Positions 33,987 through 40,179 of a stretch of DNA of 64,000 nucleotides are shown here, piece after piece. The notes under the pieces are model-generated. The model saw nothing but the letters and a program-made list of their open reading frames with translations. It did not search any database and had not been told where the DNA came from. The first letter of the stretch is position 1, and each line of letters starts with the position of its first letter. A program made the position numbers and the translations under genes. The DNA is from Oopsacas minuta (lineage: Eukaryota > Animalia > Porifera), in contig JAKMXF010000017.1 in assembly GCA_024704765.1 (NCBI GenBank), forward strand, positions 23,292 to 87,291, given 5' to 3'.

Positions 33987-34023
33987 CCTTTCTGATATTT
34001 TATACCAGGGCCGTAGCTAGGGG

Positions 34024-34493
34024 CAGAGCCGGATTAAGCAGTTTCGAGGCCCTGGGCTAAATATTCAATGAGGCCCTCGAACCCTTTTACCCCTAAAATT
34101 TATACAAGAGGAAATTTGTTAAATGTATTTCACTAAAGTTTTGTAGAATTCATTATAGTATAAATTGCATGACAGCCATCAAAAATTAACTTGTCGAGAC
34201 TTCATTTCAACAAATGTCCTTAGTACATCCTCAAATTCAACTTTTTTGAGTAGTTCGCTTTCAATTGACATGAGAGATAGGTAATTAAGTCTTTCCTGTT
34301 TCATACAAGTTCTCTTTTCATTTAAAATAAGTTTCAGCTTTGAAAATGAGTGCTCTGCTGTTGCATTAGTTATCATCATGACAAATATATGCGCATCATA
34401 ATTTCGACATTATGATGCGTGAGACACAGCTCAATTTGGGGGCCTTAGAGGCTGGGGCCCTGAGGCCTGTGTCCCATGGTTAATCGGGCACTG
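34024..34493 (-). mobile_element. Nested non-autonomous hAT remnant carrying a transposase C-terminal dimerisation-domain fragment (34179-34379)
   Basis: TIRs CAGAGCCGGATTAA / TTAATCGGGCACTG (12/14 match); peptide NATAEHSFSKLKLI...MKQERLNYLSLMSIE matches the hAT dimerisation consensus. Confidence 0.8.
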
Positions 34494-34919
34494 CGAATAC
34501 CTTAACTGGAATTCAGGGGCACCTGGGCTGCAGCCAAGTTAGCCCATTGGAAAATCTGGCCTTGCTTGATCCATGTCCCTAGTAACAAGTCTCCATCGAC
34601 CTCTCTCTCTCTCTATCAGGATTGTGTTCATATTAGTGAACACAATCCTGATGATAGAGACAACAGACTTTTGATAATTCCAATTATTGGAAGAATAACT
34701 AAATTGGAACTGAAACTAACCAGAAGACACCTGCACTACATACACTAATTGTGTAATTGTATAACAGACATAACTCTAACCAAGAAACATCCCTAAATTT
34801 ACAGGACTTACTATAGCAACCATTGACGTACATTGGTATTCTCAAGTTACACAAGTATAAGATAGAGTCTGTAATAATTCAAAATATTATTTCTAACAAA
34901 CCCAAATCTAAACAATAAA

Positions 34920-36079
34920 ATGGCAACAAATCAGCCCATAATTGTACCAGTTAATGAATTGGCACAATTCGATTATGTCGCTACTCAAATCATGAATAAG
35001 TTCGATCTCCTAATTAAGCAGCTGATCGCGAGGAGGGACGCTCTCCTTGGGAAACTCAGAGATATGAAATGGAATATTTATCAAAAGAGAGTACCCGTAA
35101 GGCAGCCATGCAGGAACTGGCCAATACTCAACGACACATGGAGGCGCTAAGTCTGAAAGTTAATGAGAACAAAGATCTCCATCAACAGATCACTGACCTA
35201 TATCAACAGCGCATCAAACAGCTGGAGACTCCCACAAAATTCCAGCAGCCCTTCTTCTCCTGTACGACGCTGTCCCAACTACGAACTCAGATCGCTGAGT
35301 TCGGAGAGATGAAAGAATGGGAGCTAGACTACTCTGAAGAAAAAACCTATCCTAACTGTTGGGAAGGAAGGGTACGGTAATAATGAATTGAATGCTGCAG
35401 GTCTATCTCTAGATGAACCAAATCAGTTAATTTACATAGCTGATTATCATAACAGTCGTATCCAAGTTGTGTCTTTTGAAGGAAAATTCTTGAAAAGATT
35501 TGGACAAGACATACTCGAAGGACCATGGGGAATAGCTGTGGCAGAAGATAACGTCTTCATTACGGACAGAGAACTCCACGCTTTGTTACAGTTCAACAAG
35601 AAGGATTACAAACTAGTGAAGAGGACTGGTAACGAAGAAGCAGGAGATGGAGAGCTAAATGAACCACTTGGACTCTGTGTTCACTACAATGGAGACGTGT
35701 ATATGGCTGATTGTTACAATCACAGAGTTTCTATATTCTCTAAAGCTCTTGAATTTGTTAATTGTTTGGGTACTCAACAGCTACAACATCCTCAGGATGT
35801 TAAAGTTACTCCCACTAGCATTGTAGTGCTAGACTACAGTCCTAATTGTGTACACTTCTACTCGGGAAGTGGACACCTTATAAACTCATGTACTACTTTT
35901 GGGCAGGATGGTGGTGTATCGTCCCTTCTTCTGTAGTTTGGATGTAGCATGGAATATTCTTATTACTGATCTTTCCGTCACAATATTAAGATACTATCTC
36001 CATCAGGAGAGCTATTACACACCATAGGGAGGATAGAAGATGGGAGAGAAGAATTTACAAATCCATATGGTATTAGTAC
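34920..36079 (+). pseudogene. Coiled-coil + NHL-repeat (TRIM-NHL-like C-terminal half) gene, frameshifted and truncated by the RAG1-like transposon
   Basis: MATNQPIIVP..., coiled coil, LIYIADYHNSRIQV, GPWGIAV, EPLGLCV, DVYMADCYNHRV, HPQDVKV; about 4 frameshifts; last repeat 'FTNPYGIST' ends at the CACAGTG end. Confidence 0.85.
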
Positions 36080-39077
36080 CACAGTGGCACGGCATGTGGA
36101 AATAGGTGAAAAAAATATAACTTCAAATTGCTTTATAGTGTTGATATTTGAATTCAGCACCCCCACAAACCTCGGAAAACATTTGACATCTCTACAATAG
36201 ACTTTCCATTTAGCTCCTACGTCTATTCCAATGAAAGCATAATTGAAATTCGAAAGATTGATTTATGGTTTCAATTTTCGGTCATGATGTAATTTTGAAT
36301 AATATGGATTCTCTACGTCAAATAACTGCTATTTATAGTATACCAATCGAAAGCTCTTATGTTGCTGAATAATAAATCACGTTAATCTTGGCTCCAATGA
36401 ACAGATGGAATTTACTATTCTCATTTTAAACAAGCTTGTTCGTACAAGTGCAATAAATAGAAACACGTTTCATTAAAACTCTAGTACTTTTTTTGCCTTC
36501 ACTTGCGGAACTTTCCATTGCACTTTCCTAATAGCTCTTTTCGTCCTCTACAAAATACACTTTAAATTATGGTGTCAGGAAGTGTCAACGATATTTTTTT
36601 TTGCGATTTTAAATATAATCCATTCACAATTATCTAATTTTGGCCCATATAAATCATAAATAATTGTTGTGGTTGTTTATTAGCACATTTTTCATTATGA
36701 ATAACGAAGATGCATACACGTTCTTAACTGCACAAAAGAATAAAACAATCACTTCTCTCGCGTCCTCGTTTATTGTCCTCAATAATTTGGAAGAAACAGA
36801 GCATGATACAGTTCGGAGAAAATTTTCGACCCTCAGAGAAGATAGGAGAGAATACCTGAAACGAGCCGATATAACTACTTGGAATGTGATACCTTTTCAT
36901 ACACCACTTAAACACCCGAGATTGAGTACAGGTTATCAATGCTCAGATGAAGTCATGGTGATAGGGAGTGTTTCTTCTAGCCAATCAACCTCTGTTTTCG
37001 AAGAAGATTTTAGTAAGCCCACCCGTAAGCCTCTGAGGGAATTATCAACTAAAGGTCTTCGCAGCCGATTGTCCTCCTTACTAACACATCTTGAAAAGGT
37101 TGCTGTACAAGAGAATGTTTCCAGTAAAGAACTATCCTGTTACCTGATGATGCTATGTTCACAGACTGAATCCGACTTTACTACTACCAAGTTCTGTAAA
37201 GAAATTATTGCTAAGGGAAGCTTCGGTCCAGTCTGCAATGAACTGACCTCCGATAAAGCTGCGTTCTTGATGGATTCTTTAGAAATTGGAAAGAAGAAAT
37301 ACATCGATTTAAGACGTTTATTGCTTTCAGATGTCCAGCTTCCAGGTTACAATCGATTAGCTACCCATCGATCTCAAATTTGCTTGACTAATGACATCTT
37401 TCAGTTGATCGAGAACATCGGGTAGGCATTGCTGTATCTTACAAAAAGCTTCTGACTCATACAGTAAACAGAATATTGACTGCTTCTGCCAATGAAATTC
37501 CCAGCGCCAGCAATCCTAAAAGGATACGAATTTCAGATGGACTTGACGGTTCTGGCTCTCACCGGGTTTATCAGCAAGCGACTCACCCCAATATTTCAAC
37601 AAAAAGTTTTATTTTATTCGGGTTTAAGGTGATTTCCATATCCGACACCGATAACAAACTGATTTGGAAAAACCCTCTACCAAATTCTCCTTTCTCAATT
37701 AGACCCGTTGCGATACTAGCTCTACAGGAGAACGAAGACAATATTCGATATCTTATGGATACACTAATCAATAAGGAGTCCACAGAGATAACGGTAAAGG
37801 GTTTAGAACTAACAAGCGGATTTTGTGAAGTTGAAATTCAACGTTCACAATTGGATGGCAAAATGGCTAAGATTATTAGTGGAGTTGGGGGTGCATGTTG
37901 CCAGTTCTGTACAGCGACATTCAAACAAATCCATGATCCGGATATCGTAAAAGACGGTTTTCCAATTAATCGATCCATCACAGACCTGAAAGTATTATTT
38001 GATGAAGTTAACGAAGAGGAGTTTCTATCATTATCTTCTGACAACAGATTCAACGTTACACACAGACCAATATCTGACTTAGAAATCATACCCAGTTCGC
38101 CTTTGCATGCATATCTCCGATGTTTTGGCTGGTTTTTACATCTAATTAGCCATTTGCACGCAGGAGTATTTAAGTGGTCACCAACTTCTAAGAGAGTCTC
38201 AGATGCTAAAACTTTCGTTACAAGTTTAATTAAAGACAATCTCAATATGATTATTGACATCCCTTCAACACAAGGTGGCACAACGACTACTGGTAATGTG
38301 GTAAGACGATGCTTGATAAGAAAGGATGACAACGATCAAGATTTCCTCTACTGGGTTTTGACAGTGATCCCGTCTGAGTTCAAGTCCCACATAATTGAAA
38401 TTCACACATGCCTAGGAGCAATCCTACGCGTCTATAATAGCAGCAGAAGAGTGGATACAGAAGAACTAGCGCTTGTTTGCAGTAATATCTACCAGTCAAT
38501 TCTCTGTGCATTTCCTTGGGCTAATGTTTCCCCGACGTTACACAAACTGTTAGCACATGCACCGGAAATCATCTCAACGTTTAATGATGGACATGGGCTA
38601 GAGAACTTATCTGAAGAAGGACTAGAGGCTTCTAACAAATATATTCGGAGATACAGAGATCGTCTTGCTCGCAAGTTTTCATTTGAAGAAAATTTAAAGG
38701 ATGTATTTGTTCGATTGATTTCTCACAGTGATCCCATGCTGTTAATGAATCGCAAGTTTTCTATTCCAAGGCCTCCATCTAGCCAAGGACTTAGAAGTAG
38801 CCAAGATATTTTAGTGAACACCCTTATTCGTGATCATGAAGATCATAATGATGATTAAAAGTAACCTCTCAATCGATTAATAGAAAATTTGGGGAATTTT
38901 CACACCTCAGATAGGTGACAATGACGTCATAACTTTGTCACCTGAAGGGATAGAGAAAAAATGAGTATCCCATTCGATTCATTGGGCTCGAAAACCTATA
39001 TGACAATAATACATTTTGAGGACCTATGTGCCATCAAAATGCCTATTTCCACATTCTGACCATTTCGTGCCACTGTG
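36080..39077 (+). mobile_element. RAG1-like / Transib-superfamily DNA transposon, 2998 bp
   Basis: Ends CACAGTGGCACG (36080-36091) and CGTGCCACTGTG (39066-39077); shared inner block ATGTGGAAATAGG; encodes a RAG1-core-like DDE transposase; no 5-bp TSD (AGTAC vs CCAAG). Confidence 0.9.
36697..38858 (+). CDS. RAG1L: RAG1-like transposase (~720 aa if one missing nucleotide near 37400 is restored); split into two ORFs as assembled
   Basis: NBD-like RKPLRELSTKGLRSRL...KEIIAKG; DDBD-like 'KAAFLMDSLEIGKKKY'; catalytic-like SDGLDG (D600), QLDGK (D708), SEEGLEASNK (E962); Zn ligands CCQFC and HKLLAH; TGNVVRR and C-terminal ARK..DVF.RL..SDP. Confidence 0.88.
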
Positions 39078-40179
39078 CCAAGCCCCCCCTAAAGTTTACT
39101 TAGCCCCTCCTAACACTACGCTATGGCTACGGCCCTGTTTTATACACTATTTTGCTATACAAATGAAATATCTATTTTGTGTATTCATCTTAAATTAAAA
39201 ATATTTGGAATGAACTCATTATCCAACCTCGTATAGTGTATCCATAAACCATATCATGCGTTCCAGATTCCTTCTGTTGGCCACTTTTGAATGGACGTTG
39301 CGATTTCTCGTGAATAAATTAATTAATACATACCAATGCCATGATACTAATACCACCGCTAGACAAATTGGGTGGTTTGTGGAGCTAGTAGTATTGTTGC
39401 AGTTGTCATGCAATGGTGGTCAGGACGGACCTAATGTAGCGACCAAATACAGCAGACATATTCAAGTAAACAATATTAACTTTTATATTAATTATCAATG
39501 ACTTGGATTGTGTATCAGTGATATCTAAGATAGGGGGTTCTAAGCAGCAACCTAGGTTGCTGAGTGCCCTCAAGCTTCATCAACCTATATAGTGACGGAA
39601 ATCATATATAATAAGGGGGGATTTTTATGTACCAATCTAGCTTGCCGGTTAGAAAATTTCTATAAGAGAAAAATGAGTTGTCTAATTCCAGTCACTCGAT
39701 TATCGGGCATTCTGCCAAAGCGGGCAACTTTTGTTTTGTCCGCAAGTGCCCCGATTATCGAGTGCCTAGTGTCTCTACATAATTAATTAGCTGAAAATAT
39801 TCCAAAGCATAATAGGAATGTAACTTAATATGAATTAGTTTGCGTTTCGGATTTACGAATTCCCTAAATAGCTCAAGGCCCTAATATCGTAATAAGTTAT
39901 GGGGCATAGATTTAATATAAATACAAATAGGAACATTACAAAAAACTAACAAACAAACTAAAGAAATACAATACATTTACACAAGGGTGTACGAAATACA
40001 GAAATAGTCTGACAATAAACTGGACAAACTGACACTTTTGAGTAGACAGGCCTAGACCTATGACGCCACAACACTAACTACACTAACTACGGAGGAACAT
40101 TTTTCGAGGAGGAATTGGGAATGGAGAAATGAATGGACACCCACTATCTAAACCTATTACATTGAAGTTACTATTCTAC

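Follow-up and report, generated by a model that had tools for sequence, protein, structure and literature searches.

A RAG1-like Transib transposon with asymmetric, bipartite ends in the glass sponge Oopsacas minuta

Tao et al. (2022, PMC9435367) define Subgroup I of the Transib DNA transposons by terminal inverted repeats (TIRs) that are asymmetric, by an alpha11-12 region that has been retained and by the CTT1 tail. The same study reported an equivalent of the RAG1 nonamer-binding domain (NBD) in both Transib subgroups, and for Transibs there are already descriptions of the NBD, of the CCGHC tail and of TIRs that are asymmetric (Tao 2022, Martin 2023; PMC9435367; PMC10462144). Sponges are not named in the searchable RAG and Transib papers, a body of literature that does not take in Repbase or subscription journals. 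The subject here is an element of 2,998 bp, found at positions 36080-39077 of a 64-kb stretch of DNA from Oopsacas minuta (Porifera, Hexactinellida), the whole of which is called the window below. The element is very probably a slightly damaged copy of a Transib-superfamily DNA transposon that is young, multi-copy and of autonomous type, a member of the branch in which RAG1-like accessory parts are kept (the equivalent of Subgroup I in Tao et al. 2022, PMC9435367), and it encodes a RAG1-core-like DDE transposase of ~720 aa. An earlier note, made by eye from the sequence, had described a RAG1-like element of 3 kb with heptamer ends and the landmarks of the RAG1 core, and this description holds for the ends, the DDE triad, the CxxC and Hx4H motifs and the alanine that follows the catalytic glutamate.

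Subgroup I Transibs, which include ctenophore, Hydra and bacterial examples (PMC9435367), resemble the sponge element in having a single gene, ends of the CACAGTG type and duplications of 5 bp at the target site (TSDs), the latter being seen in sister copies of the sponge element. They also share its asymmetric bipartite ends, its retained ZnC2 segment and its NBD-equivalent, and the CCGHC-type CTT1 tail is present in the sponge element's nearest relatives. The differences are that the subclade of the sponge element is without CTT1, that its NBD is without the GRP motif, and that the host belongs to the phylum Porifera and is a hexactinellid.

Both ends of the element start with CACAGTG. In the 5′ TIR (36080..36106, plus strand), a 12-bp box, CACAGTGGCACG, made up of a heptamer like that of recombination signal sequences (RSSs) and five further bases, is followed by a 2-bp spacer and by a 13-bp box 2, ATGTGGAAATAGG, which ends at base 27. 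In the 3′ TIR (39042..39077, minus strand), the same 12-bp box is followed by an 11-bp spacer and a 13-bp box 2 that ends at base 36 from the end. The copy of CACAGTGGCACG at 36080-36091 has its exact reverse complement at 39066-39077, and the 64-kb window contains no other match, 0.1 being the number expected by chance; the agreement between the two copies of box 2, at 36094-36106 and 39042-39054, is likewise perfect over 13 bp. The perfect RSS heptamers that had been noticed at the ends are thus part of a longer 12-bp box with an exact inverse at the right end.

The same architecture recurs among relatives. An alignment of ends from five families with 40-63% protein identity (the window family with L002, and L003, L005, L006 and L007, all loci being turned so that the gene lies on the plus strand) revealed bipartite ends in 5/5 families, each time with the extra spacer at the 3′ end. 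In four of the five (40-45% protein identity), this extra spacer is exactly 9 bp long despite differing spacer sequences, and box 2 (..GGAAATAGG, ..AGAATAGG or ..GGAGTWGG) ends at base 27 on the 5′ side and at base 36 on the 3′ side; in L003 the extra spacer is 13 bp. This fixed geometry is the best evidence that box 2 and its spacing are likely to be functional, and it suggests, by analogy, that a dimer of the NBD-like domain could bind the distal box and enforce the pairing of unequal ends. A difference in end architecture between relatives with and without a C-terminal zinc-knuckle tail was also considered and rejected, as the 27/36 geometry is common to both.

A 5-bp duplication of the target site is a signature of Transib and RAG. 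Perfect 5-bp TSDs flank L002-L007, which comprise sister copies and members of four related families (CCACA, CGGAA, CACCA, TAGAG, TAAAG and GTCAG), while the flanks of L001 match at 4/5 bases (CTATC/CTATT). Ends were mapped for seven elements, and every one of these is 3.0-3.4 kb long, single-gene and TSD-bearing.

The second open reading frame (ORF) of the element is 100% identical to O. minuta LOD99_10084. Contamination of the contig is excluded and the host is a hexactinellid sponge, so that the guess of a sponge-like genome was right. The family is multi-copy: relatives in O. minuta form 34 further protein clusters spread across many large contigs, and three assembled copies are 98.7-98.9% identical over their full length, the sister loci having been drawn from assembly GCA_024704765.1. 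Because these three copies are so similar from end to end, the transposon family is young, and each of the three carries a lesion of its own. Related elements also occur elsewhere. In runs X5, X6, X8 and X9, which derive from other organisms, elements 85-95% alike to window positions 36080-39077 were found, some of them with internal deletions of 1.35-1.9 kb, and in X5 and X6 the element ends were 5-10 times deeper than the interior. The over-represented ends, together with the internal deletions, make derivatives resembling miniature inverted-repeat transposable elements, that is, non-autonomous ones, likely in those organisms.

The element contains one long sense frame, running from an ATG at 36697 to a TAA at 38856-38858, with a single break at a T-run at 37399-37401. 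The first part of the transposase ORF (36697..37401, plus strand, frame 1) covers the N-terminal domain, the NBD-like domain and DDBD-like helices, and the second part (37401..38858, plus strand, frame 3, ending in the TAA stop) covers the pre-RNase H, RNase H, ZnC2, ZnH2 and CTD regions. At the frameshift site (37399..37401, plus strand), the run has three Ts in the window copy (TTT) versus four (TTTT) in both assembled sister copies, and four Ts would yield a single 720-aa frame; the frameshift that had been noted beforehand is therefore present in the assembly. Short-read (Logan) contigs from the same sample do carry the extra T, but with paralogue-type single-nucleotide polymorphisms of P0002-like copies, and are not assignable to this locus. 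Differences in homopolymer length between the assembly and the same-sample contigs were found at 36637, 37398 and 38862, two of them in non-coding parts, and since most or all of the contig depth supports those at 36637 and 38862, they suggest homopolymer errors in the public assembly. The frame leaves 617 bp before the ATG and ~220 bp after the stop, so that no second gene fits, and no convergent RAG2L (kelch + PHD) gene is present between the TIRs of the window element; both the distance of ~220 bp to the right end at 39077 and the missing RAG2-like gene had been read correctly before.

Other explanations of the break were tried and rejected. A short intron, for which GT..AG candidates 43 and 50 nt long lie at 37422-37471, does not fit in place of the frameshift, as P0002, P0011 and P0040 read through the region with conserved residues and one T differs. 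Nor can the annotated model P0001 be the true protein, as its intron deletes 20 conserved residues, GYNRLATHRSQICLTNDIF(S); the public gene model thus masks the frameshift with an artificial intron, at the cost of those residues. Gene models of three O. minuta copies (P0001, P0002 and P0005) contain invented introns that bridge frameshifts or deletions and are probably chimeric. In UniRef these copies bear the name “V(D)J recombination-activating protein 1”, while others are named as “Ras-GAP” or “FGGY” domain proteins. An antisense ORF of 164 aa that lies within the transposase gene (37838-38332, minus strand) is probably spurious.

The catalytic residues of the transposase, all encoded on the plus strand, are the aspartate in GLDGSG (37545-37547), the aspartate in QLDGKMA (37854-37856) and the glutamate in EEGLE-A (38625-38627), which is followed by alanine, and the zinc site consists of CQFC (CxxC; 37899-37910) and HKLLAH (Hx4H; 38541-38558). 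The DDE, CxxC and Hx4H columns are invariant across 24 relatives and align to those of RAG1, BbRAG1L and HzTransib, which confirms the triad, the zinc site and the alanine as they had been picked out by eye. Against PDB sequences, the second ORF matched HzTransib (E-value 1.4e-21), BbRAG1L (1.5e-11) and RAG1 (2e-5), and a family profile built from the 24 full-length relatives (A1) reached E 7.8e-63 with HzTransib, in an alignment that begins at profile position 168 and skips 405-454. With BbRAG1L, the same profile aligned at E 1.1e-37 and without a break, and with mouse RAG1 at E 2.7e-21 in a single stretch, RAG1 362-992. Given where the HzTransib alignment starts and what it skips, HzTransib is missing the first 167 positions of the profile as well as a part of ZnC2, both of which are common to the sponge-type proteins, RAG1 and RAG1L. 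The distance from CxxC to LH is ~63 residues in the window protein, and the retained ZnC2 segment would be the equivalent of alpha11-alpha12.

Structural modelling agrees with these alignments. The proposed superposition was carried out with an AlphaFold model of an intact relative, P0011 (719 aa, 63% identical, pLDDT 85), which gave a TM of 0.83 to HzTransib and of 0.72-0.75 to RAG1 and BbRAG1L. Neither a Pfam match nor clusters of cysteines could be found in the window protein for a RAG1-type N-terminal zinc/RING region, and the Cys-rich C-terminal tail is not present in the window protein or its eight-row subclade, in line with the earlier observation that no RING finger or Cys-rich tail is visible. 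The predicted order of domains starts with a small helical domain at the N-terminus and a three-helix domain of NBD-like type, and continues with DDBD, pre-RNase H, RNase H, full-length ZnC2, ZnH2 and CTD.

At the N-terminus, residues 1-65 (36697..36891, plus strand) are modelled as a four-helix domain (pLDDT ~90) that is free of cysteine and conserved across the sponge-type clade. Its model bears a weak likeness to the ParB/Noc helix-turn-helix region (VIA Z 4.2-4.4 to 6sdk/7ol9, rmsd 2.3-2.5 A), and it may serve as an accessory DNA-binding or dimerisation domain. It is followed by the NBD-like domain, residues ~106-165 (structural match 106-172; 37012..37191, plus strand), for which the evidence is an NBD-only profile and a superposition on 3gna_A and which includes RKPLRELSTKGLRSRL (37024-37071, plus strand). 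When the 63-column NBD-only profile was run against 177,635 PDB sequences, the top 16 matches were all to RAG1, at residues 391-423 and including 3GNA, with a best E of 3e-4; the next match came at E 0.5. When the first 234 residues of the window protein itself were modelled (pLDDT 83.5), the top 20 Foldseek matches were all NBD-containing RAG1 chains, and the model superposed on the isolated NBD crystal structure 3GNA with a TM of 0.78. In VIA-align, model residues 106-172 fitted RAG1 390-456 (3gna_A) with Z 6.8 and rmsd 2.7 A over 66/68 residues, and residues 108-228, that is NBD plus DDBD, fitted RAG1 391-510 with Z 7.5-7.8, values that the tool describes as common among helical folds. Homology is accepted despite these modest Z values because the structural register is identical to that of the sequence alignment. 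On profile and model alike, the N-terminal segment is to be regarded as a true relative of the RAG1 NBD, as its alignment by eye had indicated. The GRPR/K AT-hook is not present in the window's NBD-like domain, which has SKPTRKPL there (family consensus RK), and the domain is therefore an NBD* as in BbRAG1L, to which it bears a greater likeness than to the NBD of RAG1.

An exhaustive HMMER search returned 6,718 relatives, 953 of them below 1e-30. The position of the sponge protein was examined in a maximum-likelihood tree of 76 rows (quick search, SH-aLRT support), which is unrooted and was built without RAG1 or RAG1L sequences. The window protein falls in a tailless clade of eight rows (support 97), nested in a clade of 18 rows (support 100) in which all other members but one have CxxCGExGHx5C. 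Sister to these 18 rows is the P0129 / P0124 clade, which holds a protein from the krill Meganyctiphanes norvegica, and a branch with support of 100 parts these clades from the HzTransib-type group. Because the tailless clade nests within the tailed one, the zinc-knuckle tail was lost secondarily, and once, in the window subclade, and the window protein is accordingly derived and not ancestral. The nearest ESM-Atlas clusters come from arthropods, rotifers and fungi. The patchy host range of the P0129 / P0124 clade, in which krill stands next to the sponge type, fits horizontal transfer of Transibs. A protein of 1,174 aa, P0215 (31 cluster members, ENA/Logan), combines a Transib-type core and a zinc-knuckle tail with an N-terminal extension of ~375 residues for which Pfam gave no match. 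Its branch in the tree is very long, and the protein, when considered as a RAG1L candidate, was not recognisable as one. No RAG1L could be identified among the best 150 of the 6,718 representative matches, a word-indexed search with P0124 returned its own family alone and no RAG1L, and a related-locus search of genome contigs found no bacterial Transibs for rooting.

The NBD is not confined to the sponge-type branch. Twelve HzTransib-type representatives of 585-745 aa, whose profile (A4) matches HzTransib at E 1.9e-195, have ~155 N-terminal positions beyond HzTransib, with a GRPxK...RSKRR motif, and hhalign aligned this region with the sponge-type NBD and DDBD at 97.6% probability (E 3e-12). 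Since long HzTransib-type Transibs carry a homologous GRPxK domain, the premise that Transibs lack an NBD is true of short forms only, such as HzTransib. HzTransib itself (Helicoverpa zea; PDB 6pqn) is the best match to the catalytic core of the sponge element (E 1.4e-21; TM 0.83), has no RAG2 partner and would presumably share its nick-hairpin chemistry and 5-bp TSD; it differs in lacking the N-terminal helical domain, the NBD and ~36 residues of ZnC2, and in lying on the other side of the branch with support of 100.

These results bear on the interpretation put forward in the earlier note, namely that the element is a special evolutionary intermediate between minimal Transibs and RAG1L-RAG2L elements, kept in a lineage that branches below the cnidarians. 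Such a reading gains from the real NBD, the asymmetric ends and the sponge host, from the full-length ZnC2 segment, common to RAG1 and BbRAG1L but not to HzTransib, and from the higher score of BbRAG1L with the sponge-type profile than with the Hz-type one (133 vs 82 bits), a crude proxy that is consistent with Subgroup I. It is nevertheless unlikely, as the NBD-equivalent with GRPxK occurs in long Hz-type Transibs too, these features have already been published for Transibs (PMC9435367; PMC10462144), and the catalytic core scores closest to HzTransib. Moreover, the sponge protein lies deep within a large Transib clade, the majority of whose transposases bear the zinc-knuckle tail, with a krill sequence in the sister group and with arthropod, rotifer and fungal clusters nearest to it in the Atlas, and the secondary loss of the zinc knuckle makes its subclade derived. 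What remains of that interpretation is a single-gene, RAG1-like sponge transposon that lacks RAG2L and whose NBD-like domain is genuine; its special status and the novelty tied to it fall with the nesting among ordinary Transibs. The reading as a special INTERMEDIATE is not supported by the sequence comparisons, and the element represents a new host and not a missing link.

It is also conceivable that the element was once a RAGL transposon of the ProtoRAG type that secondarily lost its RAG2L gene, and the comparison with BbRAG1L of amphioxus ProtoRAG (PDB 6b40) offers several points in favour: an NBD* without GRPR/K, alanine after the catalytic glutamate, a full ZnC2 and a CCGHC-type tail in the sponge element's near relatives, while the NBD and DDBD region scores separately at E 0.0065. 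This history is very improbable, as the window protein has no RAG1 N-terminal zinc or RING domains, 7/7 end-mapped elements are 3.0-3.4 kb, single-gene and TSD-bearing, and the sequence is nearer to HzTransib than to BbRAG1L, whose overall similarity is lower (1.5e-11). BbRAG1L differs further in requiring RAG2L, in possessing N-terminal zinc domains and in having nearly symmetric TIRs. Finally, a domesticated RAG1-like recombinase serving the sponge, as the annotated gene LOD99_10084 and the UniRef name V(D)J recombination-activating protein 1 might imply, can hardly be reconciled with the presence, at unrelated sites, of many copies that are nearly identical and have intact TIRs and TSDs, a separate lesion in each assembled copy, an annotated model that masks a frameshift with an artificial intron and loses 20 conserved residues, and internally deleted derivatives with the same ends.

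Several points weigh against the preferred reading of the element as a slightly damaged copy of a Subgroup I Transib. This copy is without a 5-bp TSD, AGTAC lying on its left and CCAAG on its right. Transduction from a cryptic Transib end further upstream, which would bear the CCAAG duplication, was considered as the origin of the missing TSD and rejected, as there is no CCAAGCAC within the window. As assembled, the window copy would be inactive through its 1-nt frameshift. The placement in Subgroup I is consistent with common features and profile scores and does not derive from a rooted phylogeny, and the Z-scores of the NBD superpositions are of the common kind given above. Lastly, the lack of the GRPR/K AT-hook makes the predicted binding of box 2 less certain.

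The comparison can be extended to vertebrate RAG1, whose core shares with the sponge transposase the DDE triad, the C2H2 zinc site, the heptamer CACAGTG and an NBD fold in register (RAG1 390-456). RSSs are 28 and 39 bp long, and the spacers of AanRAGL are 4/13 bp. Like the 12/23 RSS pair, the sponge element has two signal lengths about one helical turn apart, 27/36 as against 28/39. The differences are that the sponge element is mobile, is without RAG2, the RING or ZDD domain and the GRPR motif, and has a box 2 (GGAAATAGG) that is not the nonamer ACAAAAACC, with a length gap of 9 bp and not 11.

With regard to its surroundings, the Transib sits inside a hAT-like composite unit (33998-39138), each end of which has a 12-bp TIR, CAGGGCCGTAGC, and which shows a perfect duplication of 8 bp, TTTTATAC. 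This unit also contains what is left of a hAT dimerisation domain (minus strand, 34179-34379) together with a gene piece with coiled-coil and NHL parts (34920-35936), and the right end of the Transib adjoins the last 61 bp of the hAT. At L004 1-1033, 6369-7361 and 9008-10160, in an ENA assembly, a related Transib is also found among NHL-repeat genes, like the window element.

By analogy with HzTransib, BbRAGL and RAG, on which the proposed mechanism is modelled, a dimer of the transposase would pair both ends of the element, nick at the CACAGTG heptamer and then form hairpins on the flanking DNA. The excised element would insert through a 5-bp staggered cut, and the 5-bp duplication is directly seen in sister copies. 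The NBD-like dimer would probably read box 2, whose position at the 3′ end is deeper inside the element by one helical turn (9 bp) than its position at the 5′ end. Members of the window subclade would do so without the C-terminal zinc knuckle, the presumed DNA clamp used by their nearest relatives and by RAG1L proteins. It is tentatively conceivable, though on balance doubtful, that the NBD dimer alone, the zinc-knuckle clamp being lost, reads the 27/36 geometry and enforces pairing of a short with a long end, as a natural counterpart, independent of RAG2, to the 12/23 rule in an animal lineage that branched early. If true, this would resemble the path to vertebrate RAG1, on which the CCGHC tail was also lost.

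For the sponge, the public gene labels “V(D)J recombination-activating protein 1”, with their frameshift-skipping introns, are misleading. For the family, glass sponges are added to the hosts of RAG1-like Transibs that combine an NBD with a full zinc-binding domain and with ends that are asymmetric and bipartite, and naturally intact relatives with defined short and long ends, such as the 719-aa P0011, whose family includes two insertions with perfect TSDs, provide a substrate with which to ask whether the NBD alone imposes unequal-end pairing. The picture of RAG origins is unchanged by the sponge element, which fits the presence of the NBD, the CCGHC tail and asymmetric ends already in ancestral Transibs.

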